A DNA stretch of 64,000 nucleotides, from positions 62,001 to 126,000 of the IMG/VR virus record IMGVR_UViG_3300046536_000256; one strand, written 5' to 3'. The position numbers and the translations under genes were made by a program. Under the pieces are notes generated by a model that did not search any database, was not told the origin of the DNA, and saw nothing but the letters and a program-made list of their open reading frames with translations. Positions 6,149 through 50,763 of the stretch are shown here, piece after piece. Position 1 is the first letter of the stretch, and each line of letters starts with the position of its first letter.

Positions 6149-8491
6149 TTAGTCGAGCGCGAGGAGTACCAGCGGTTGCTTACGAGATACGTGACGAAGA
6201 GTCGCCATGTTCTTGTCAACGGCCGAGTAGCTCCACAGCCACAGATTGTCGCTGGTAGTGAAACACACCAGTTTATCAATGGTGTCAAACGAAGCTTCTT
6301 CGCCCATGGTCGGATCGAAAGCTTTCTCGATCAGATCGAAGTATTCCGGGAAGGTGCTGCGTTTCAATTGAATCGGTAGGTTTGTATCGGTGTAGATCGG
6401 GCCGCCACGGTTGTTAATGAACGTGATGTACAGTGGGCGTTCCAGAATCAATTCCTGCGCGTACTTGATCTGCTCGATAGCCGACAGTTCTGCTGCATCC
6501 GGTTTGGATGGATGAGCGTACGTGAAGATTTTCAGTTCTTCGAGCAGGTAGTGTTCTTGATCATTCGAGTTCAGGATGCGGAACATCACGGAGTCGGTTC
6601 GCTCCAAGATACCATCCAGTTCCTCGTAGTCCTTCACAATGCTGTCCACCGAAAGGTAGTGAGCTTCGTGAGGGTAACTGTCGTAACCAGCACAGTTAAT
6701 GAAGTAGTTATTGATTGCCGTTGTCAGTCGACTGTCAATGAACGACATCAGTTCTTTGTCGATGATGTTCTGACGGAAGTACGCCAGGGTTGCTTTCATC
6801 GCGGTGTAGAAGTTAGGACGCGTTGTCATCTCGCTGTCTTTAAACAGGAATGGCAGGTCCTGGAACAAACGGACTTTGTCTTCCGGTTTCGCGCACGCAA
6901 ACGTATCCCACACTTTGGTGTTGAAGCTCACCGCGTTGACTTTGGTGAAGTTCTGGCTTACACGCTGGTTGACATTGATCAGGGTCGATTCCAACTCTTT
7001 CGAGCTGGCAGCCAAGATCTGGTCTTTCAGGGTGATAACCGGGATTTTGTCTTTCTCCTCCAGCGTTTGGCAAGTCTCAATAGAGATTGTCAGTGCTGCG
7101 TCGCCTTTCAAGCCGGCAACATCTTCAACCGCAGAAGTTTCAACGGTCAAGAAATCTCCGCCATCATCGGACAGACGTGGTAGGAGTTTATGCGGGTCAC
7201 TCAAAACGGTAGGCATATCGTAGCCCTCGCAACGGACGATTCGACTGAACCATCCCGAGTCCGCATCAAGATCGATAATCACGATCCGGAAGCAGCCCTC
7301 TAGGACGGTTTCCTCTTTCTTCATTTCTGGGTGTTTAACAAACGCGTGCTTAATATTCTTCCAGTCGGTCTCGGTAACCAAGTAATGATTTGGTTTACCG
7401 ATGTTGTAGAAGAATCTGCTGAGCTGGAACTCTCCTTTGTTTTTGGGTGTAAGGTTGTTAAGGTCGTTACGGATTTTGTTCCAGTTGTGATCTGCGGCAA
7501 TGCTCGCTTCGACTGGGTCGTGACGGTCATTGTGCTGAACGTTCCCATGGTAATCACGGGCGTTCTTCTGAACGATGGAGAACAGATCACGGGCATCGCC
7601 GAAATCGGCCTGTCCGTGCATCGCCAGACCTTGGTTGCCGTACAGATACTCGGCACCCGATTCATAGCGGTTGTTCGTCAAGTCAGACCGAACAGCGGCT
7701 TTGATTTCCCACTTGATCCCAGCATACGGGTTGTTGATCCCGAACACCGCACACGCCGAGCTGATCACGTCGCTGTAGTTTTCCAGGTTTGGCATTTTGA
7801 TGGCCAAGTCCTTAGGCAACTGGCGAGCGTGGACGTTACCTTCCGGCGTCTTCATCAACCAGTTAACCATCTCCATAAAGAGGATGGAACGGATTGCGAC
7901 TTCAGCCGCACTCAGGTACTGGTTGGAGTTCAGCTCTTCCCGACCGGTCTCCTGACGGATATTGATCAAGCGCCAGCCGAACAACGGAGCTGCTGCAATC
8001 GCCACCGGGCGGTTAAATTCCTGGTGGCGAGAGAACATGGTGATAAACGCATCACGCACTGGACAAGGATGACCTTGCTCATTACGACGGAAACTCTCCA
8101 CCGTTTGTCGGTATACCTCATAAAACTTACCCGACCGCGAGATGAGGTGCTGCATGAAGATTACGTTGATCTGCACCACCTGGGAAGCGTGGTACTGCAT
8201 CGAGTCCTGATCAGGGCCTGAGGAATTTAGAATCTCCTGCATGCCCTGATCGAATACGCCACCCGAACCGTACGATTCCCATTTGATACCACCACCCATC
8301 GCAGCGGTACCGCCATCGACCATCTGACGAAACATCGCCATTGGGTCCATGGGTTGCCCCAGCATGGGGGTTGCACCTAACATGCCTGTGCGAGCACCAG
8401 CAATAGGAAGTTGACCCTGCAAGTTTGGGACTGATACACCGACTCCTCCACCTGGACGAATCATACCGCTTTGACCATTGTTCTGTTGCAT
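6149..8491 (-). CDS. Large hypothetical protein downstream of the nvRNAP beta gene; M/G/Q-rich N-terminus
   Basis: 780-aa ORF in an operon with the RNAP subunit. Confidence 0.75.
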   Translation of the reverse strand: MQQNNGQSGMIRPGGGVGVSVPNLQGQLPIAGARTGMLGATPMLGQPMDPMAMFRQMVDGGTAAMGGGIKWESYGSGGVFDQGMQEILNSSGPDQDSMQYHASQVVQINVIFMQHLISRSGKFYEVYRQTVESFRRNEQGHPCPVRDAFITMFSRHQEFNRPVAIAAAPLFGWRLINIRQETGREELNSNQYLSAAEVAIRSILFMEMVNWLMKTPEGNVHARQLPKDLAIKMPNLENYSDVISSACAVFGINNPYAGIKWEIKAAVRSDLTNNRYESGAEYLYGNQGLAMHGQADFGDARDLFSIVQKNARDYHGNVQHNDRHDPVEASIAADHNWNKIRNDLNNLTPKNKGEFQLSRFFYNIGKPNHYLVTETDWKNIKHAFVKHPEMKKEETVLEGCFRIVIIDLDADSGWFSRIVRCEGYDMPTVLSDPHKLLPRLSDDGGDFLTVETSAVEDVAGLKGDAALTISIETCQTLEEKDKIPVITLKDQILAASSKELESTLINVNQRVSQNFTKVNAVSFNTKVWDTFACAKPEDKVRLFQDLPFLFKDSEMTTRPNFYTAMKATLAYFRQNIIDKELMSFIDSRLTTAINNYFINCAGYDSYPHEAHYLSVDSIVKDYEELDGILERTDSVMFRILNSNDQEHYLLEELKIFTYAHPSKPDAAELSAIEQIKYAQELILERPLYITFINNRGGPIYTDTNLPIQLKRSTFPEYFDLIEKAFDPTMGEEASFDTIDKLVCFTTSDNLWLWSYSAVDKNMATLRHVSRKQPLVLLALD

Positions 8492-8505
8492 GGCTAGTTT
8501 ACTCT

Positions 8506-10158
8506 TTATTCGCGACGCTTCAGCCTGTTACTGGTCGACTCATATAACTCTTTGAACTCGGGAGCGAGTCCGGTTACTTTGTCGTTGATCAGATGGAGGC
8601 ATGGTGTCAGATACCCTCGTCCGTCTGGATACGGGTTAGTCACCCGCAGGTAACTGTTTACGAAAGGCAAGGAAGGGTGAGTGAAGCACGCGCTGTCAGT
8701 TGTATCAAAATCACCGCGCTTCTTCTTGTTGCCTACCCCGGTATAGACCTTGTGCTGTGGCATGCATCCCAACACATAATCGATGAACGGATTATCTGTC
8801 GGTGTCGGTTCCTGAATGAGATTGGTCGTTCGCGCATTGTCAATCTCCTTGATGTGAAAATTGTTATTAAGGAACCGGGACACTTTCTTCTGGCTGAGTT
8901 CCGAGTTGTTCTTGATGTCGTGTTTGAAACTGTTGGCGGCTGTGATCAGCTTGTCCAACGTGAATTCCAAACTCGCCAGCTCTTTGTAGAGCATGGAGGC
9001 ACGATCGGTTGTCTGAACGATCTCACTGCGGTTAGCAATGATGTAGTTAAACAAATCGAACATGTTCGACACCACGATGGACTGGGACGCGAATTTCTTA
9101 ATCGAGTCTTCGTCCAGGTACTCGTTGATCGAGTCAAAGTGCTCATACATTAAACGCATGATGTACTCGTTACTGTCTCCCGCTTTCACGGAGCAGCGAC
9201 CGATGATCAACTTCCAGTAGTCCGGGTTGTCAATGCTGTCAATATCAAAGTACGAGGAAAGGCAATCAATGACAAACAACAACGCCCCGGCATACTGCAA
9301 CGCCATAGAGCTCAGCTCTTTACGCTTATCGGACTTGTTCCGTACCGCCACGGCATAGTCGTGGCCTACGAAGTCACCCAAAGAACGCGAGTTAGGCGAA
9401 CTGGAACGGGTGATAATTTCCCAACGATCCCCTGGTTTGCATTCCGCAACCAAAGCATCGGTAGGTCCGATCTCAAAGTCACACTCGCCATACTGTTGCA
9501 TGGCTTTGGTGAACCCCATATCCGCAAAGATGTACCAGGCTAGTAAAGGCGTAGGGGTTTTGGTGTCCTTGATCTTCCTGGCTTCCGTCGGGCTATAAAA
9601 CCGATTGGCTGCCAAGTTGATGTCGGCGGTTCGCGTCATGTTGCTACCGGTCTCAGAGAACACTTGGTCGTACTTAAAGTGCTCCACACCGATCTTGAAC
9701 TTGAACCCCAAGACTTTGACGAACAGCGAGTTTTCCTTAGTGACGGGTAGTCCACGTTCGGCTAACACGAATTGCAAGCTGTAATGCACGCCTCGTAACC
9801 ACAGATCGCCATGCTTGTCGCAATACGGCAACATGACATACACTGGGTTCAACGCGATAATCTTGCCAGCCTTGTCCATGTACTCGAACATGATCTTGCA
9901 AGGGTACAGCGTCTCCTTGTGAATGTCGAAGATCTTAGCGCTCGACTTAATGAGATACTCGTTGTATTCCCGAGGCGATACCCGCTTCACGTCCCGGAAG
10001 AATACCCCGCGCTTTTCAATGCTCTTGAAAATCAATCGAAGTGAATGGTCGAAATAATGAAGACCTTTCTCAAATTCCTTTTGATGAAAACCGTCAACAA
10101 TTACCTGATTGAATTTCGGCATTGTTGCTTCAATAGGTCCTATTAGCCTTGGGTGCAT
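8506..10158 (-). CDS. Non-virion RNA polymerase beta-like subunit, N-terminal part (phiKZ gp123-like)
   Basis: N-terminal MPKFN..IVDGF, LWLRGVHY...VLAERG and C-terminal HPS...GRGYLTP motifs; lies two genes downstream of the major capsid gene. Confidence 0.8.
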   Translation of the reverse strand: MHPRLIGPIEATMPKFNQVIVDGFHQKEFEKGLHYFDHSLRLIFKSIEKRGVFFRDVKRVSPREYNEYLIKSSAKIFDIHKETLYPCKIMFEYMDKAGKIIALNPVYVMLPYCDKHGDLWLRGVHYSLQFVLAERGLPVTKENSLFVKVLGFKFKIGVEHFKYDQVFSETGSNMTRTADINLAANRFYSPTEARKIKDTKTPTPLLAWYIFADMGFTKAMQQYGECDFEIGPTDALVAECKPGDRWEIITRSSSPNSRSLGDFVGHDYAVAVRNKSDKRKELSSMALQYAGALLFVIDCLSSYFDIDSIDNPDYWKLIIGRCSVKAGDSNEYIMRLMYEHFDSINEYLDEDSIKKFASQSIVVSNMFDLFNYIIANRSEIVQTTDRASMLYKELASLEFTLDKLITAANSFKHDIKNNSELSQKKVSRFLNNNFHIKEIDNARTTNLIQEPTPTDNPFIDYVLGCMPQHKVYTGVGNKKKRGDFDTTDSACFTHPSLPFVNSYLRVTNPYPDGRGYLTPCLHLINDKVTGLAPEFKELYESTSNRLKRRE

Positions 10159-45323: not shown

Positions 45324-45360
45324 GAATATCCCCAAGGAGCAAGGCCCCTTGGAGATATTC
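45324..45360 (-). terminator. Hairpin with TATG tail
   Basis: gaatatccccaagg...ccttggagatattc; minus-strand tail TATGAC. Confidence 0.65.
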
Positions 45361-45371
45361 GTAGACGTTTA

Positions 45372-45896
45372 TTACAGTTTCCCCATCCCTGCCTTTCTTG
45401 CCAACTCCAGAATTTCCTTCTCCTCTTTAGAGAGTCCAGCTTCCGGAGGTGTTGCATCGGCATCGGCTTTGGAACGTTGTGCTTCGCCCTCACTGATCGC
45501 CAGCACCAAGTCGTCCACTAAGAAAGCTGGTAGGTTCAGGTAGTCATGAAGGGGAATCACATCTTTCAACTTAGCCCGTCCGTAGTACTTACCAATGGCA
45601 TTAATCGACCACGGGTGTACAAACTCATTCTCCTTTTTAATGAAGGCAACTGAAGAATGCGGGTTAAGCTGAGATCGGTCGTAATACCCCATGTTGAAGT
45701 CATGCAGTATCCCCTCTTGGAAGTCCAACGACTCTGGTCGGTCCAGGTGTGTCGGAAGTCCAAGAAGGTTGTTGTTTACTACATGAAACTCATCGCTGAA
45801 GTGTCTCTCGAAATCTATTCCGAGATGGCTTCTTTGGTCGCGGCTGCCGCTTCGGCCGCTTGAGTCATCAGCTTCAACTGGGTAAGGGTAAAAAAA
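45372..45896 (-). CDS. Tail/baseplate assembly chaperone 'T'-like segment, probably reached by -1 frameshift from 45815..47557
   Basis: The frame is open from the T7 run at 45896-45890 to the stop at 45372; the annotated TTG start has no clear SD; contains YLNLPAFLVDDL. Confidence 0.7.
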   Translation of the reverse strand, partial: FFYPYPVEADDSSGRSGSRDQRSHLGIDFERHFSDEFHVVNNNLLGLPTHLDRPESLDFQEGILHDFNMGYYDRSQLNPHSSVAFIKKENEFVHPWSINAIGKYYGRAKLKDVIPLHDYLNLPAFLVDDLVLAISEGEAQRSKADADATPPEAGLSKEEKEILELARKAGMGKL

Positions 45897-47557
45897 GCCA
45901 TGAACGGGTCGATCGGGGTGTAGCCAAAACGACGGTCAGGGTCCTGGAACTCTTCGGTCCGCTTCTTGCACACCGGGCAGTGGTAGTTAGCCACAGCAAC
46001 GAAGGTGTGCGCCATCTGCGGCGATTTGTTCAGGATGAAGGCAGAGAGGGTCTTGTTCAGCTCACGGCTATCCAAGATCACGTCCATACAACCCTTGTTG
46101 AATTCGGACGCTTCACATTCCGAACGCTTCAACACCAGGTCTTCTTCGTCAGTACCCGGCGCGCCCACCGACACGTAGGTCTTGATCCAGTGCAGGAACT
46201 CAGTCGCACCCAGGGTAGTCAACAGCAGAGCGACCTGAGTCTTGAACTCTTTCTCGTCGATAACCTTGGAGCGAATTTCCTGGAGCTGTGGGTTGATACG
46301 ACCGGCGTAGTAGTCGTAGGTTTCGAACGCTTCAGCCATCGACGAAGGACCGACTTCGAAGTAGATCGACTTGTCAACGTTGTAGACCCGATTGCTTTCC
46401 AGGCCGTAGGTCGACTTCTCGATCATTTCCAGCGTCTGCTCAACGGTGTACTTCGCATTACCGTTGTACAGGTTGGCGTAGATCGCCGACTCTTCCGGAG
46501 TTTCGATGCTGTGACGCACACGCACCAGCTTGTCCGGATCACTGACCTGGAAGTCAGACCAGTCGCACTTGTCGTTCAGGCAACGCAGCTGGAGGTTGAC
46601 CCCGTGACTGTGGGTCGAGCGCAGCAGTGCCATGCAGATGGTGCCGAAGTCGCTGAACCGCACAACCTGAGACAGGTCCTTGAAGTCAACGATACCAGTG
46701 ACCGAACTGTTGACGATACGTGCCGCCAAGAAGTCCCAGACCACACGCATGCCAGCCATGACCGACAGAGTGACACTGTTACCGCCCACGGTACGCACGT
46801 AGCCTTTAACGGTACGGTTGATGTCGTTGACCAGCGCTGCCAGTTCCAGCTTGCTTGGACGGGTGAAGGTCAGCATGCAGTACGAATCACGCAGCAACAC
46901 GTCGAACTGGAATTCACCGTTCTCAGCACGCATCGAAGAACGACGCATTACTTCAGAAACAGAGAACCCTTTCGACGCACGACTTGGCTTCTTGCCCAGG
47001 ATGTCCGTGGTAACAATGTTGCTGCCACGGTCACTGACGTTGGAGATACCGTCTTCGTTCATGACCTTGGAACGGATCTTGATGCTGTCGACGTACTCTT
47101 CCATGAAACGGTAGAGGTCGCCGCAGATCTGCTCCATTTCTTCAGCAGTCTTGTCGGCGTGGCTCGCTTCCAAGTACTGAGCCCATTCGTTCTTGGTCGA
47201 CGCCAGCATGCCATCCGACGCTTGGCCTTGTTCGTGCAACGACTTCATTGCAGTCGTTTGCAGCCACTTGGACAGCAGGATGTTGGCACGCTCGTTGCAG
47301 TCACGAGAGTTACCCAAGAAGATCGGAAGGTAGCCGAGTTGTTTGTCCTCTTCAGTACCAGGACGAATCAACTCAGAGACCGAAGGCAGGATCTTCTTCA
47401 TCGGGGTGTTTTCAGCGGTGTGGGTTTCGCCGAAGCTGGCTTCTGCCACCGGAGCGGCTGGGGCCACTGGGACCACCGGCACTGGGGAGGCTTCAGCTGG
47501 ATCTTCCGCAACCCCGGCTTGCGTGGTGTTCGCCGGGTTGTTCTCTTGTTCACTCAT
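45815..47557 (-). CDS. Tail/baseplate hub assembly protein (T4 gp26-like chaperone)
   Basis: D...I..ALLRS...G......C....C and CPVC motifs; C-terminal ...DPFMAFF lies on a slippery run. Confidence 0.55.
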   Translation of the reverse strand: MSEQENNPANTTQAGVAEDPAEASPVPVVPVAPAAPVAEASFGETHTAENTPMKKILPSVSELIRPGTEEDKQLGYLPIFLGNSRDCNERANILLSKWLQTTAMKSLHEQGQASDGMLASTKNEWAQYLEASHADKTAEEMEQICGDLYRFMEEYVDSIKIRSKVMNEDGISNVSDRGSNIVTTDILGKKPSRASKGFSVSEVMRRSSMRAENGEFQFDVLLRDSYCMLTFTRPSKLELAALVNDINRTVKGYVRTVGGNSVTLSVMAGMRVVWDFLAARIVNSSVTGIVDFKDLSQVVRFSDFGTICMALLRSTHSHGVNLQLRCLNDKCDWSDFQVSDPDKLVRVRHSIETPEESAIYANLYNGNAKYTVEQTLEMIEKSTYGLESNRVYNVDKSIYFEVGPSSMAEAFETYDYYAGRINPQLQEIRSKVIDEKEFKTQVALLLTTLGATEFLHWIKTYVSVGAPGTDEEDLVLKRSECEASEFNKGCMDVILDSRELNKTLSAFILNKSPQMAHTFVAVANYHCPVCKKRTEEFQDPDRRFGYTPIDPFMAFFTLTQLKLMTQAAEAAAATKEAISE

Positions 47558-48494: not shown

Positions 48495-49454
48495 ATGATT
48501 ATTGAGACCCAAGATGTGGTAGTGATGAATGAGGATGAAGATCTTGCCGCCACCCTCATGGGCGGAATCTGGACTGACTTTAAGGCCTCTATTCCCGAGC
48601 CTCAAGCTAAAATATTGACCGAGGGGTTCAATTTAATTCTCCTCAGCAATCCTAGCGAGTCCGATCAAGAAGACCTTTCCGATCCAGACTTCAATTCGGG
48701 ACGTCAGGACACTCTGCTACCCAACGTGATCACCGGCTTGTTGGTAGATGAAAATACCCACACGCCAGAAAAGAAAAATGCGGTCTTTCAGCTCATAACC
48801 GGCAATATAATCGAAACGCTGGTGAAGTTAGGCTTTACGCTCAACGAAGACGAAGTTAACCCAGATCGTCTGACCCAACTGAACCAACTGGTGTCTTTGT
48901 TCTACGACCTGAATAACTACCAAGACCTGATCGGCTTGGCAGACGTGCTGGACTCTGCGGACATCCCACCGAAAGACCGTTACCTAATGGTCATGCAGAA
49001 GTACCTGGGTGAGAACTTCGACATCGACGTCTACGAGCTCATGGTGGACGATGTGAGCGAGGTTACACTCAAAGCCATCCGTGACTCGCTGATGCAGGAA
49101 GACATGACCGAGATGCCCGCACAGAGCATCATAAAGCGTATCGTCCAGAACAAAGCAGAACTGGACGGCACTCTGGTCTATACTCACATCCGTAATAACG
49201 GTCAAGTCGGTGGGTCGGTACAAAGCTTCCTGAACTTCTACCGTCGTGAACTGGATGCCCTCACCGACGAGCCTACTCCAGAGAACCTGTTCAAGTACGG
49301 TAAAGAAGTGATCGCGATCTTCCTGGCCAGTGAATTGAATACGCCGGTCATTAAGGACAGGCTGATGCGGTTCCTTGCTGACGTCGTGACCGACTACCAG
49401 GCTTTGATCCAAATCGAAAACCTTATTAACCGGTTGGTACTCACCGATGAATAA
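48495..49454 (+). CDS. Virion/head-associated protein (gp79-like)
   Basis: Acidic helical protein immediately upstream of the vRNAP subunit; start uncertain (48459 or 48495). Confidence 0.6.
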   Translation: MIIETQDVVVMNEDEDLAATLMGGIWTDFKASIPEPQAKILTEGFNLILLSNPSESDQEDLSDPDFNSGRQDTLLPNVITGLLVDENTHTPEKKNAVFQLITGNIIETLVKLGFTLNEDEVNPDRLTQLNQLVSLFYDLNNYQDLIGLADVLDSADIPPKDRYLMVMQKYLGENFDIDVYELMVDDVSEVTLKAIRDSLMQEDMTEMPAQSIIKRIVQNKAELDGTLVYTHIRNNGQVGGSVQSFLNFYRRELDALTDEPTPENLFKYGKEVIAIFLASELNTPVIKDRLMRFLADVVTDYQALIQIENLINRLVLTDE

Positions 49455-50742
49455 AATCGAATTCCTCAAGCACTGCTTTGACAATAAGGGTTACGGGTTA
49501 AAGGCAGCGCTGCAATCCATGATCACCATTCAGTTTGAAGATGAAGACTCGTCTGGGGCTTTTAAGAAGATCCCTTACGCGGTCTTCGTGGAGGGTGGCA
49601 AGTATCACACCCTGATCGACGGAGAGTCGGTGGTTGTAGAAGGTGACGCTAAATCCCCTCTGCTGTACATGGACCTTCCCTTGGATCTCCCTGGTGACTT
49701 CCACCCCTGCTTGAAGGGTAAGCCGGTTCAAACCACCTTCGGCTTGTTCCTGTTCAACGTGATCCTGTTCTGGGAACCTTTCCAGGGTAAGGTGGACTAC
49801 GTTAACAAAGAGTTCACCAAACCGCTGATCGAGGACTTACTAAACCGGTTGATGGTCGATAACCCACAGCCAGGCGAAACTGTGCCGGACGATAAGGCCA
49901 GTGTTGACGACTGTCTGAAGCTCAGTGAGAACTTCAACTTCCTGGAAGGCCTGGGTACTCACTTCGTTAAGCCCGGTGGCGTAGACGTGATGCAGGTGAG
50001 TCCTGCGGTCATGAAGCGCAAGGCCGAGCTCATGGAGATCCACAAGCATGAGCTGAACGATCCGGTGGTGTTTACTGCCATGATCGACGAGCTGGTTAAA
50101 CTGGACGAAGCCGAGCAGCGGAAAGGGCCGAGTAAGAACTTCTTCATTAACAAGAAGTTCATCCACACTGCTCGTAAACGGATGTTCATTGCTTTCGGTA
50201 TTGAACCGGATGCTAACGGCGGTTGGAGAGCATTGCCTCAGTCGTTGGACCAAGGTATCGATCCGAAGTACATCGTCGACTACATCAACACCTCGGTAGT
50301 CGGTTCGTACTCGCGTTCGATGGCTACCGGCGACGGGGGCGCTCAAGTAAAAGAAGCCTTGCGTTTGGTGGGTCGTTCTTCTGTTGAAGCGGAGGACTGC
50401 GGCAGTCCTGTCGGTGAGAAGATCATCATCGACGCCAAGAACAAGCGCGGCTGGATTGGTAGTTACCAGGTTGTGGACAAGAAGGCGGTGGAGTTGACCG
50501 CGGAAAGTCTTGACAAGCTGGTGGGCAAGACTATCTTCATTCGTGTCACCGAGTACTGCACCCAGCCGGACGGCAACTACTGCAAAGTCTGCTGTGGTGA
50601 AAGTCTTGGTAAGTACGGCACACGTATCTCCGCCGAGGTGGTGTTGATTCCTACCACGTCCATGTTGACGCGGATGAAGGCGGCCCACACTGCGGGCGGC
50701 ACCGTAGTGCGGTTGGACTTGAGCACGGCCATTCGTAAATAA
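49447..50742 (+). CDS. Virion RNA polymerase beta'-like subunit, C-terminal part (gp80-like)
   Basis: Bridge-helix-like GSYSRSMATGDGG, EDCGS, zinc-binding C...YCKVCCG and trigger-loop MKAAH. Confidence 0.85.
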   Translation: MNKIEFLKHCFDNKGYGLKAALQSMITIQFEDEDSSGAFKKIPYAVFVEGGKYHTLIDGESVVVEGDAKSPLLYMDLPLDLPGDFHPCLKGKPVQTTFGLFLFNVILFWEPFQGKVDYVNKEFTKPLIEDLLNRLMVDNPQPGETVPDDKASVDDCLKLSENFNFLEGLGTHFVKPGGVDVMQVSPAVMKRKAELMEIHKHELNDPVVFTAMIDELVKLDEAEQRKGPSKNFFINKKFIHTARKRMFIAFGIEPDANGGWRALPQSLDQGIDPKYIVDYINTSVVGSYSRSMATGDGGAQVKEALRLVGRSSVEAEDCGSPVGEKIIIDAKNKRGWIGSYQVVDKKAVELTAESLDKLVGKTIFIRVTEYCTQPDGNYCKVCCGESLGKYGTRISAEVVLIPTTSMLTRMKAAHTAGGTVVRLDLSTAIRK

Positions 50743-50763
50743 GACAAAAAAAGCACAGGCCGC

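Follow-up and report, generated by a model that had tools for sequence, protein, structure and literature searches.

The question raised by this locus is whether two neighboring genes of a phiKZ-like giant phage, annotated separately in related genomes, are a single gene with two products, the longer of which would be made by a −1 shift of the reading frame on a run of T's. The window analyzed was a 64,000-nt stretch of DNA from a metagenome assembly (IMG/VR UViG_3300046536_000256), which represents a new EL-like phage; a megablast search of the phage collection with the locus returned no match. An earlier note, made from the sequence alone, described a T TTT TTT heptamer near the end of a 580-aa ORF, an open −1 frame running into a small ORF whose TTG start lacks a clear Shine-Dalgarno sequence, and predicted products of 580 and 728 aa. 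It proposed a G/GT-like chaperone pair in a T4 gp26-like gene with Cys motifs and without an adjacent tape-measure gene, and named polymerase slippage on the T7 run as an alternative mechanism.

The sequence was first re-examined, and what the note had observed was confirmed. The 580-aa ORF is located on the minus strand (47557..45815), which reads ATG GCT TTT TTT ACC at the site. In the 0 frame, the codons are GCT (A554), TTT (F555), TTT (F556), and ACC, and the T7 run (45896-45890, minus strand) is therefore an in-phase X XXY YYZ heptamer with its first T as the third base of the Ala554 codon. The 0-frame stop is TAG at 45817-45815. The −1 frame has no stop from about 45935 down to TAA at 45374-45372, and its translation from 45890 starts with YPYPVEADDSSGRSG, as the note had written. 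The extension comprises 172 codons plus the stop (45372..45890, minus strand), and the predicted trans-frame product is 556 + 172 = 728 aa. Across the predicted junction, the tryptic peptide would read FGYTPIDPFMAFF-YPYPVEADDSSGR in the protein of the window, and the sequence in phiKZ would read ...IPIDMLSTFF-YFGGLEVKPDGVVNDLR. The first ATG/GTG/TTG in the −1 frame is TTG at 45728, codon 54 after the slip site. Shine-Dalgarno pairing was weak for this TTG and for the next ATG (45692), −3.0 and −3.1 kcal/mol, respectively, compared to a median of −5.5 for 51 long ORFs of the window and a background of −2.3.

The 580-aa protein was identified by homology and synteny as an orthologue of phage EL gp47 (tblastn, E 6e-146) and phiKZ gp77, Chimalliviridae core gene cg18 (core gene table in the supplement of PMC10299810), and it matched phrog_4585 (E 1e-108). 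The alignment with phiKZ gp77 includes the four invariant cysteines (C326, C331, C527, and C530) and the Phe-Phe pair. Synteny next to the vRNAP beta' subunit is also conserved. The N-terminal ~45 aa are disordered and P/A-rich, and a C-terminal helix spans residues 551-579 in the AF2 model (pLDDT 86.9, pTM 0.85). The C-terminal ~95 residues of the extension matched phrog_19747 (EL gp48 family), whereas the AlphaFold model of the 172-aa extension was poor (pLDDT 57). Pfam searches returned no family for either piece, even at E 10 over 20 orthologues, and PDB profile and Foldseek PDB searches gave no match.

Conservation across phiKZ-like orthologues had been set as a test beforehand, and the result was positive. 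An in-phase T TTT TTN heptamer was found at the homologous Phe-Phe in 29 of the 29 related genomes tabulated, down to 18% protein identity (18 TTTTTTT, 10 TTTTTTC, and 1 TTTTTTA). The genomes included EL, OBP, RisingSun, Miami, pTD1-like Vibrio phages, phiKZ, 201phi2-1, SPN3US, PCH45, and a Bacillus phage. The X and Y positions never vary, only Z does, and the preceding codon takes 7 different forms, encoding 7 different residues but always ending in T. Four metagenomic outliers have shorter or out-of-phase T runs and keep T TTT only, which fits single-tRNA slippage on T TTT or RNA-polymerase slippage better than tandem slippage. Since the search for related loci used peptide patterns that include the FF motif, tblastn-derived loci and codon-level features not fixed by those patterns were also relied upon. 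Chance is an unlikely explanation for the site: the window holds only two T7/A7 runs on both strands where 11.3 are expected, and this is the only one inside a gene. The genome also prefers TTC over TTT (991 to 401), yet both Phe codons here are TTT and the preceding Ala codon is GCT.

The frame relation is equally conserved. In all 29 genomes, the downstream ORF lies in the −1 frame although the gap varies from −4 to +218 nt, and the −1 frame is open for 149-184 codons. The chance of such openness is 1e-7 for phiKZ and 7e-8 for the Bacillus phage AgentSmith. The first possible start codon lies anywhere from codon 8 to codon 87, often inside conserved sequence.

Selection on the −1 frame was detected from the slip site on. 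In the dual-coding overlap (45818..45889, minus strand), the 0 frame encodes the end of the C-terminal helix (TLTQLKLM...KEAISE) and the −1 frame encodes a YPYP...SG-rich linker predicted to be disordered. The CC dinucleotides at +9/+10 and +15/+16 are invariant in 20 of 20 genomes; they encode Pro-x-Pro in the −1 frame, while the 0-frame residues vary and 0-frame third bases are invariant C. The following stretch (45729..45814, minus strand), annotated as intergenic in relatives, is open in the −1 frame, has no ATG/GTG/TTG, and encodes the conserved motif FS.E[FY]..V..NL[LF]G. In the window's clade, the only indel is one whole codon, there are no stops, and differences by codon position are 413/334/512. 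The extension was aligned by tblastn from its first residue in one piece, and the extensions of the EL type and the phiKZ type are homologous (hhalign, E 2e-5). The 0-frame tail is also under selection, with a wobble pattern in the window's clade, which suggests that both products matter.

Naturally fused homologues were searched for and none was found. All 41 close homologues are 559-615 aa long. In an exhaustive profile search (648 hits), none of the best 150 hits listed or of the earlier homologues exceeds 657 aa, and among the 182 proteins of at least 280 aa examined, 172 have the CxxC..F[FL] motif and end 8-51 residues after it. A stimulatory RNA was also searched for: folding energies of the 75 nt downstream were like those of shuffled sequence in all 29 genomes, RNAalifold predicted 0 pairs, and Rfam gave no match. 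No upstream SD-like element is conserved. A 17-bp perfect hairpin just after the stop codon of the extension (45325..45361, minus strand; dG −30.8 kcal/mol, z −6.0) is the probable 3' end of the transcript. In phiKZ-like RNA, a nanopore cDNA contig ends with a poly(A) tail a few bases after the homologous ORF. Assembled RNA contigs (Logan) from three runs of phiKZ-like infection carry T7 with no indel at the run, although contigs hide minority U8 transcripts, and one raw-read run had no reads on the locus.

The best explanation, to which a probability of roughly 0.68 is assigned, is programmed −1 ribosomal frameshifting in cg18. In this view, most ribosomes read the 0 frame and finish at TAG 45817-45815, giving a 580-aa protein whose last 29 residues form a long helix. 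A fraction, with tRNA-Phe on the TTT codons of the heptamer, would slip back one base and continue through the Pro-rich linker and a ~110-residue helical domain to TAA 45374-45372, giving a 728-aa protein in which most of the terminal helix is replaced by that domain. The analysis itself demonstrates the site, the frames, and their pattern of conservation and selection across phiKZ-like phages, whereas the production of the fusion protein, the ribosomal nature of the shift, its low to moderate efficiency (no stimulator is conserved), and the need for both isoforms in a fixed ratio are inferred from sequence alone. U-only heptamers are not the classic high-efficiency bacterial motif, which is A AAA AAG. 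The protein, currently listed as hypothetical, is probably a non-virion assembly factor distantly resembling the T4 gp26/gp51 hub-assembly proteins, this last step being the weakest.

The interpretation in the earlier note was thus partly supported. Its core claim, a programmed −1 shift at the T run fusing the 580-aa protein to the downstream ORF, is strongly supported by the comparative evidence, and its G/GT comparison holds as a logic. Membership of the tail-assembly-chaperone family is not shown, and 'T4 gp26-like' is a lead rather than a result. Polymerase slippage remains possible, but fits the pattern of variation less well.

Of the rival explanations, transcriptional slippage survives best, although it is considered unlikely. 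The phage or host RNA polymerase would stutter on the T run (A run in the template) and add one U to a fraction of mRNAs, and normal translation of these would give the same 728-aa fusion. The run is a homopolymer of 7-8 in 19 of 29 genomes, one outlier (P0113) has a T6 run out of phase with the canonical heptamer, no ribosomal stimulator is conserved, and homopolymer runs are otherwise avoided in the window, as expected if the polymerase slips on them. However, ten genomes from several clades have only T6 followed by C, and outliers have T4-T5, while selection for a long run would favor TTT at the second Phe codon. Variation confined to the Z position is the signature of tandem tRNA slippage. 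The T7 in the RNA contigs rules out only a majority edit.

That the small ORF is an independent gene started at a weak or non-canonical codon, with the open −1 frame and T run as by-products of coding constraints on the large protein, is improbable. Seventeen public records annotate two separate genes, and PHROG 19747 is modelled as a 120-aa protein whose profile begins near the window's TTG. However, start positions are not conserved, phiKZ and AgentSmith would lose half of the conserved extension, and Shine-Dalgarno pairing is weak. The constant −1 frame despite variable spacing, the always-open frame, and the −1-frame Pro codons directly after the heptamer are not explained, and the third-base T and TTT codons run against the genome's codon preference. 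A sequencing or assembly error hiding T8 and one continuous 728-aa ORF is very unlikely, even though homopolymers are error-prone and the window comes from a metagenome assembly, as the same two-frame arrangement with a conserved 0-frame stop appears in more than 30 independent genomes from different laboratories and platforms, RNA-derived contigs also carry T7, and no fused protein appears among the 648 profile hits.

None of the 17 public records inspected annotates the frameshift, and literature searches found no report of it; hits for 'gp77' referred to genes of other phages. If the fusion protein is real, several hundred jumbo-phage genome records, including those of model phages studied for phage nuclei and of phages considered for therapy, list one recoded gene as two. 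A core gene labelled hypothetical would gain a testable property, two isoforms in a set ratio, which is typical of assembly chaperones. The rule of a conserved frameshift in tail assembly genes would be extended to a lineage where it had not been seen, and a natural U UUU UUN slip site without a conserved stimulator, working in many bacterial hosts, would be available. Gene callers and knock-out or Tn-seq studies of phiKZ gp77/076.4, EL gp47/48, and their equivalents should then treat the pair as one unit. A more far-reaching possibility, not excluded but doubtful, is that every phiKZ-like jumbo phage (Chimalliviridae and relatives, including phiKZ, EL, 201phi2-1, SPN3US, and PCH45) depends on this frameshift, and that the two isoforms are the long-missing functional equivalent of the G/GT tail or hub assembly chaperone pair in this lineage, evolutionarily tied to T4 gp26/gp51.

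Among known systems, the lambda gpG/gpGT tail assembly chaperones and the conserved −1 frameshift of long-tailed phages (Levin 1993; Xu, Hendrix and Duda 2004) share a −1 slip near the 3' end of the upstream ORF, an extension domain reachable only by the shift, conservation of the arrangement although the sequences diverge, no need for a strong RNA stimulator, and two products (here predicted) with a common N-terminus and no naturally fused form seen. The heptamer here is T TTT TTN rather than G GGA AAG, and the short product is 530-650 aa rather than ~140 aa, four times larger than a typical chaperone. The neighbors are a virion RNA polymerase subunit, a virion structural protein, and DNA polymerase, and the gene is not next to a tape-measure gene, nor located between tube and tape-measure genes. 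No TAC Pfam family matched, and TAC-like fold similarity was weak: Phage_TAC_5 in the ESM Atlas at TM 0.53 over 92 residues, and BFVD TAC hits at E 1.4-5.5 with a probability of 0.5 or less.

For the T4 gp26 and gp51 baseplate hub assembly proteins (PF12322, T4_baseplate), the resemblance rests on weak structural leads. Foldseek against BFVD gave hits to 'Baseplate hub assembly protein, T4-like' models (E 0.02-0.026, probability 0.97-0.99, TMt 0.46-0.47), and the ESM Atlas gave feature and structure leads to PF12322 clusters (TM 0.48-0.51), with no solved structure matching. T4 gp26 ends in CPxC...FF.LL, like the jumbo-phage CPxC...FF.L, and some records label orthologues 'baseplate hub assembly protein'. 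However, PF12322 gave no hit even at E 10 in 20 orthologues, nor any in 10 remote relatives, whereas T4 gp26 and gp51 themselves score 216 and 178 bits, and hhalign aligned only the CPxC motif. The T4 proteins are 208-249 aa, and a frameshift in T4 gp26 was ruled out, as its FF is encoded by TTC TTT without a slippery site.

The E. coli dnaX tau/gamma and IS-element orfAB frameshifts are likewise bacterial tandem-slippage −1 events that set a fixed ratio of two proteins from one gene, but they use A AAA AAG with an upstream SD-like element and a downstream hairpin, neither of which is conserved here, and the dnaX shift truncates the protein, whereas this one would extend it. The HIV-1 gag-pol slip site U UUU UUA belongs to the same U-rich heptamer class, and the AgentSmith orthologue has exactly T TTT TTA, but gag-pol involves a eukaryotic ribosome, a downstream stem-loop stimulator, and an unrelated gene. 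In transcriptional slippage recoding (Thermus dnaX, Shigella mxiE, and potyvirus P3N-PIPO), a homopolymer run also gives access to another frame; the bacterial cases usually need runs of 8-9 or more, whereas many orthologues here have T6 or less, and the phase is conserved.

On the minus strand of the window, a 580-aa ORF runs from 47557 to 45815 and reads ATG GCT TTT TTT ACC near its end. The seven T's occupy positions 45896-45890, and the first of them is the third base of the Ala554 codon, which makes the run an in-phase X XXY YYZ heptamer covering Phe555 and Phe556. The 0 frame ends 24 codons later at TAG 45817-45815, while the -1 frame is open from about 45935 to TAA 45374-45372 and, read from 45890, gives 172 residues beginning YPYPVEADDSSGRSG. 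The first ATG, GTG or TTG in that frame is TTG 45728, 54 codons after the slip site. The earlier note, which had described this arrangement with predicted products of 580 and 728 aa, was thus correct in both its observation and its arithmetic. Pairing of the TTG and the next ATG (45692) with the anti-Shine-Dalgarno sequence was poor (-3.0 and -3.1 kcal/mol), compared with a median of -5.5 for 51 long ORFs of the window and a background of -2.3.

T7/A7 runs were depleted in the window, about five times rarer than in shuffled sequence (2 found, 11.3 expected), and the run at 45896-45890 was the only one inside a gene. The other one (50746-50752) lies just after the stop codon of the virion RNA polymerase subunit ORF 49447..50742(+). 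The genome prefers TTC to TTT by 991 to 401 and uses GCT for 27% of Ala codons, and a T7 at this position is therefore not what codon usage would give.

The window belongs to a 233-kb IMG/VR contig, and no known phage showed nucleotide-level similarity to it. The 580-aa protein is 42% identical to gp47 of Pseudomonas phage EL and has orthologues in RisingSun/Joad, FishSpeaker, Miami-like Klebsiella phages, pTD1-like Vibrio phages and Aeromonas phages. The large protein matched phrog_4585 and the small ORF matched phrog_19747, both of unknown function, and the Pfam search returned nothing. Synteny is conserved: a virion RNA polymerase beta' subunit and a virion structural protein lie on one strand, and a ~290-aa gene, the large gene and the small gene lie on the other, with DNA polymerase nearby. 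In phiKZ, the same arrangement identifies gp77 (533 aa), followed by a 218-nt "gap" and PHIKZ076.4. phiKZ gp77 is listed as core gene cg18, "hypothetical protein", in the Chimalliviridae core-genome table (PMC10299810 supplement). In the EL-like record PQ516283.1 (Pseudomonas phage vB_PQ1), the orthologue and its neighbour matched in three pieces (hits H21, H129 and H140), which suggests a fragmented or error-rich assembly of the region.

Conservation of the junction across phiKZ-like orthologues, set beforehand as a test of the idea, was examined in 29 genomes: the window, ten IMG/VR relatives, EL, RisingSun, FishSpeaker, Miami, four Vibrio/Photobacterium phages, Aeromonas PS1, OBP, Pantoea Survivor, Shewanella SXP01, phiKZ, 201phi2-1, Xoo-sp14, RSF1, SPN3US, PCH45, Ea35-70, Bacillus phage AgentSmith and Halocynthia phage JM-2012. 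Protein identity to the window fell to 18%. Every genome had an in-phase T TTT TTN at the homologous Phe-Phe (18 TTTTTTT, 10 TTTTTTC and 1 TTTTTTA). The preceding codon was AGT, GCT, AAT, GTT, ACT, CTT or GGT, i.e., seven different amino acids, all with codons ending in T. The downstream gene was in the -1 frame in all 29 genomes, although the annotated spacing ranged from a 4-nt overlap to 218 nt, and the -1 frame was open for 149-184 codons in all of them. Using the -1-frame stop density of each gene, the chance of openness up to the first start codon was 1e-7 for phiKZ, 7e-8 for AgentSmith, and 1e-2 to 1e-3 for many others. The first possible start codon lay anywhere between codon 8 and codon 87. 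Within the window's own clade of nine genomes it moved between codons 38 and 66, and different starts were picked by gene callers.

Several lines of sequence evidence supported the inference that the -1 frame is translated from the slip site. In tblastn searches, the 172-residue -1 piece aligned from residue 1 in a single piece in RisingSun, FishSpeaker and EL-like phages, and a conserved motif (FS.E[FY]..V..NLLG) was found in the stretch that relatives annotate as intergenic. In nine close relatives, that stretch had no stop, its only indel was one whole codon, and substitutions favoured the third position (413/334/512). In the overlap region, substitutions instead followed the wobble of the 0 frame, so the 0-frame tail is also under selection. 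The most telling result came from 20 genomes of the EL/OBP/Vibrio supergroup, in which the bases at +9/+10 and +15/+16 after the heptamer were invariant CC. These are the first two bases of two -1-frame Pro codons, and Pro-x-Pro was invariant, whereas the overlapping 0-frame residues varied (T/I/V/D, L/H/Q, T/S/I/H, Q/R) with their third bases fixed as C. Selection on the 0 frame cannot explain that pattern. The extensions of the EL-type and phiKZ-type clades are themselves homologous (hhalign E 2e-5, 89 collinear columns).

No naturally fused homologue was found. All 41 close homologues were 559-615 aa, and an exhaustive profile search of 1.84 billion representatives gave 648 hits, of which none of the proteins retrieved (best 150 listed) exceeded 657 aa. 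Among the 182 proteins of at least 280 aa examined, 172 had the CxxC..F[FL] motif and ended 8-51 residues after it. A two-frame arrangement that is never resolved by a one-base change is what would be expected if both isoforms are needed. The other ten representatives lacked the motif as defined here, although one of them (P0060) has FF with a differently spaced Cys pair. Four of the ten, the metagenomic relatives P0056, P0062, P0087 and P0113, were extracted, and all four keep an open -1 frame into a downstream gene in the -1 frame. Their T runs, however, are shorter (T4-T6) or out of phase (GTT TTT ACC, GGT TTT ATT and GTT TTT TCA), with T TTT retained in phase. The slip motif may therefore be reducible to T TTT, and single-tRNA slippage or polymerase slippage may operate in these relatives.

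No conserved stimulatory element was found: the folding energies of the 75 nt downstream were indistinguishable from shuffles in all 29 genomes, RNAalifold predicted no pairs, and Rfam had no match. For the RNA level, a phiKZ-type locus was located through IMG/VR and matched to RNA-seq runs. Contigs from three runs, one of them nanopore cDNA, carried T7 with no indel and ran continuously from the large ORF through the extension, with a poly(A)-tailed end falling a few bases after it. As contigs hide minority variants, and the single raw-read run held no phage reads, these data do not exclude low-level transcriptional slippage. RNA contigs from two studies carried one extra A, near the end of the extension ORF, relative to the record of the phiKZ-type phage PA7 (position 3517 of the extracted locus), likely a strain difference or a homopolymer error in one record. 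In the window, a perfect 17-bp hairpin without a T tract (45325-45361, minus strand; dG -30.8 kcal/mol, z -6) directly follows the stop codon of the extension and, given the transcript end in phiKZ-like RNA, is probably a transcript 3' end or terminator. No terminator-like element was found between the two ORFs.

The interpretation offered in the earlier note was partly supported. The heptamer, the relation of the frames and their pattern of conservation and selection are established by the sequences themselves, whereas the production of the fusion protein, the ribosomal nature of the shift and any role in assembly are inferred. Recoding of some kind that produces the fusion is very likely on comparative sequence evidence alone, and -1 ribosomal frameshifting is its most probable form (probability about 0.68). 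Invariant X and Y positions with a free Z position (T, C or A) are the signature of tandem tRNA slippage and argue against selection for maximal run length, and ten genomes have only six T's. Transcriptional slippage is an unlikely but surviving alternative. Frameshifting of this type is already known as a mechanism; what is new is its inferred use in a core gene of a much-studied phage family. None of the 17 GenBank/RefSeq records inspected annotates a joined CDS at this locus, and full-text literature searches, in an incomplete library and hence giving only absence of evidence, found no report of a frameshift in phiKZ-like phages or of any function for phiKZ gp77/cg18.

The 580-aa protein was modelled with AlphaFold using 40 sequences, which gave a confident prediction (pLDDT 86.9, pTM 0.85). 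Residues 1-25 fell below pLDDT 50, and confidence stayed low to about residue 30. This N-terminus (residues 1-45; 47423-47557, minus strand) is Pro/Ala-rich and appears to be the source of the "ZipA-like cell division protein" label on the orthologues of RisingSun, Joad and some Aeromonas phages, which nothing else supports. Four invariant cysteines (C326, C331, C527 and C530) suggest a zinc site. The slip site is near the start of a long predicted C-terminal helix (551-579), and the shift would therefore replace most of that helix with a Pro-rich linker and a helical domain of about 110 residues. The extension itself was modelled poorly (pLDDT 57).

No solved structure resembled the large protein. 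Against predicted viral structures, the hits fell into three tiers: jumbo-phage orthologues; a "Baseplate protein" at E 2e-17; and "Baseplate hub assembly protein, T4-like" models at E 0.02 and probability 0.97-0.99, followed by several tail or tape-measure chaperones at non-significant E-values. The ESM Atlas gave the same two leads, i.e., PF12322 clusters and a Phage_TAC_5 cluster at TM 0.53 over 92 residues. The sequence tests were negative, however: no orthologue or remote relative reached PF12322, and hhalign aligned only the CPxC motif. "Hub or tail assembly factor" is therefore treated as a tentative hypothesis, rather less likely than not, and not as a finding.

Phage T4 gp26 and gp51 (7803-8429(-) and 8480-9229(+) of the T4 sequence examined) both match Pfam PF12322 strongly and are thus paralogues. 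gp26 ends CPECGK...GLKEFFELL, which recalls the CPxC...FF.L of the jumbo-phage protein, but T4 encodes its FF as TTC TTT, without a slippery site, and gene 25 starts in the -1 frame, overlapping the gene 26 stop by one base. The chaperone analogy drawn in the earlier note, unproven as homology, is plausible in logic. In having no conserved stimulator, the jumbo-phage site resembles lambda G/GT, which works without one.
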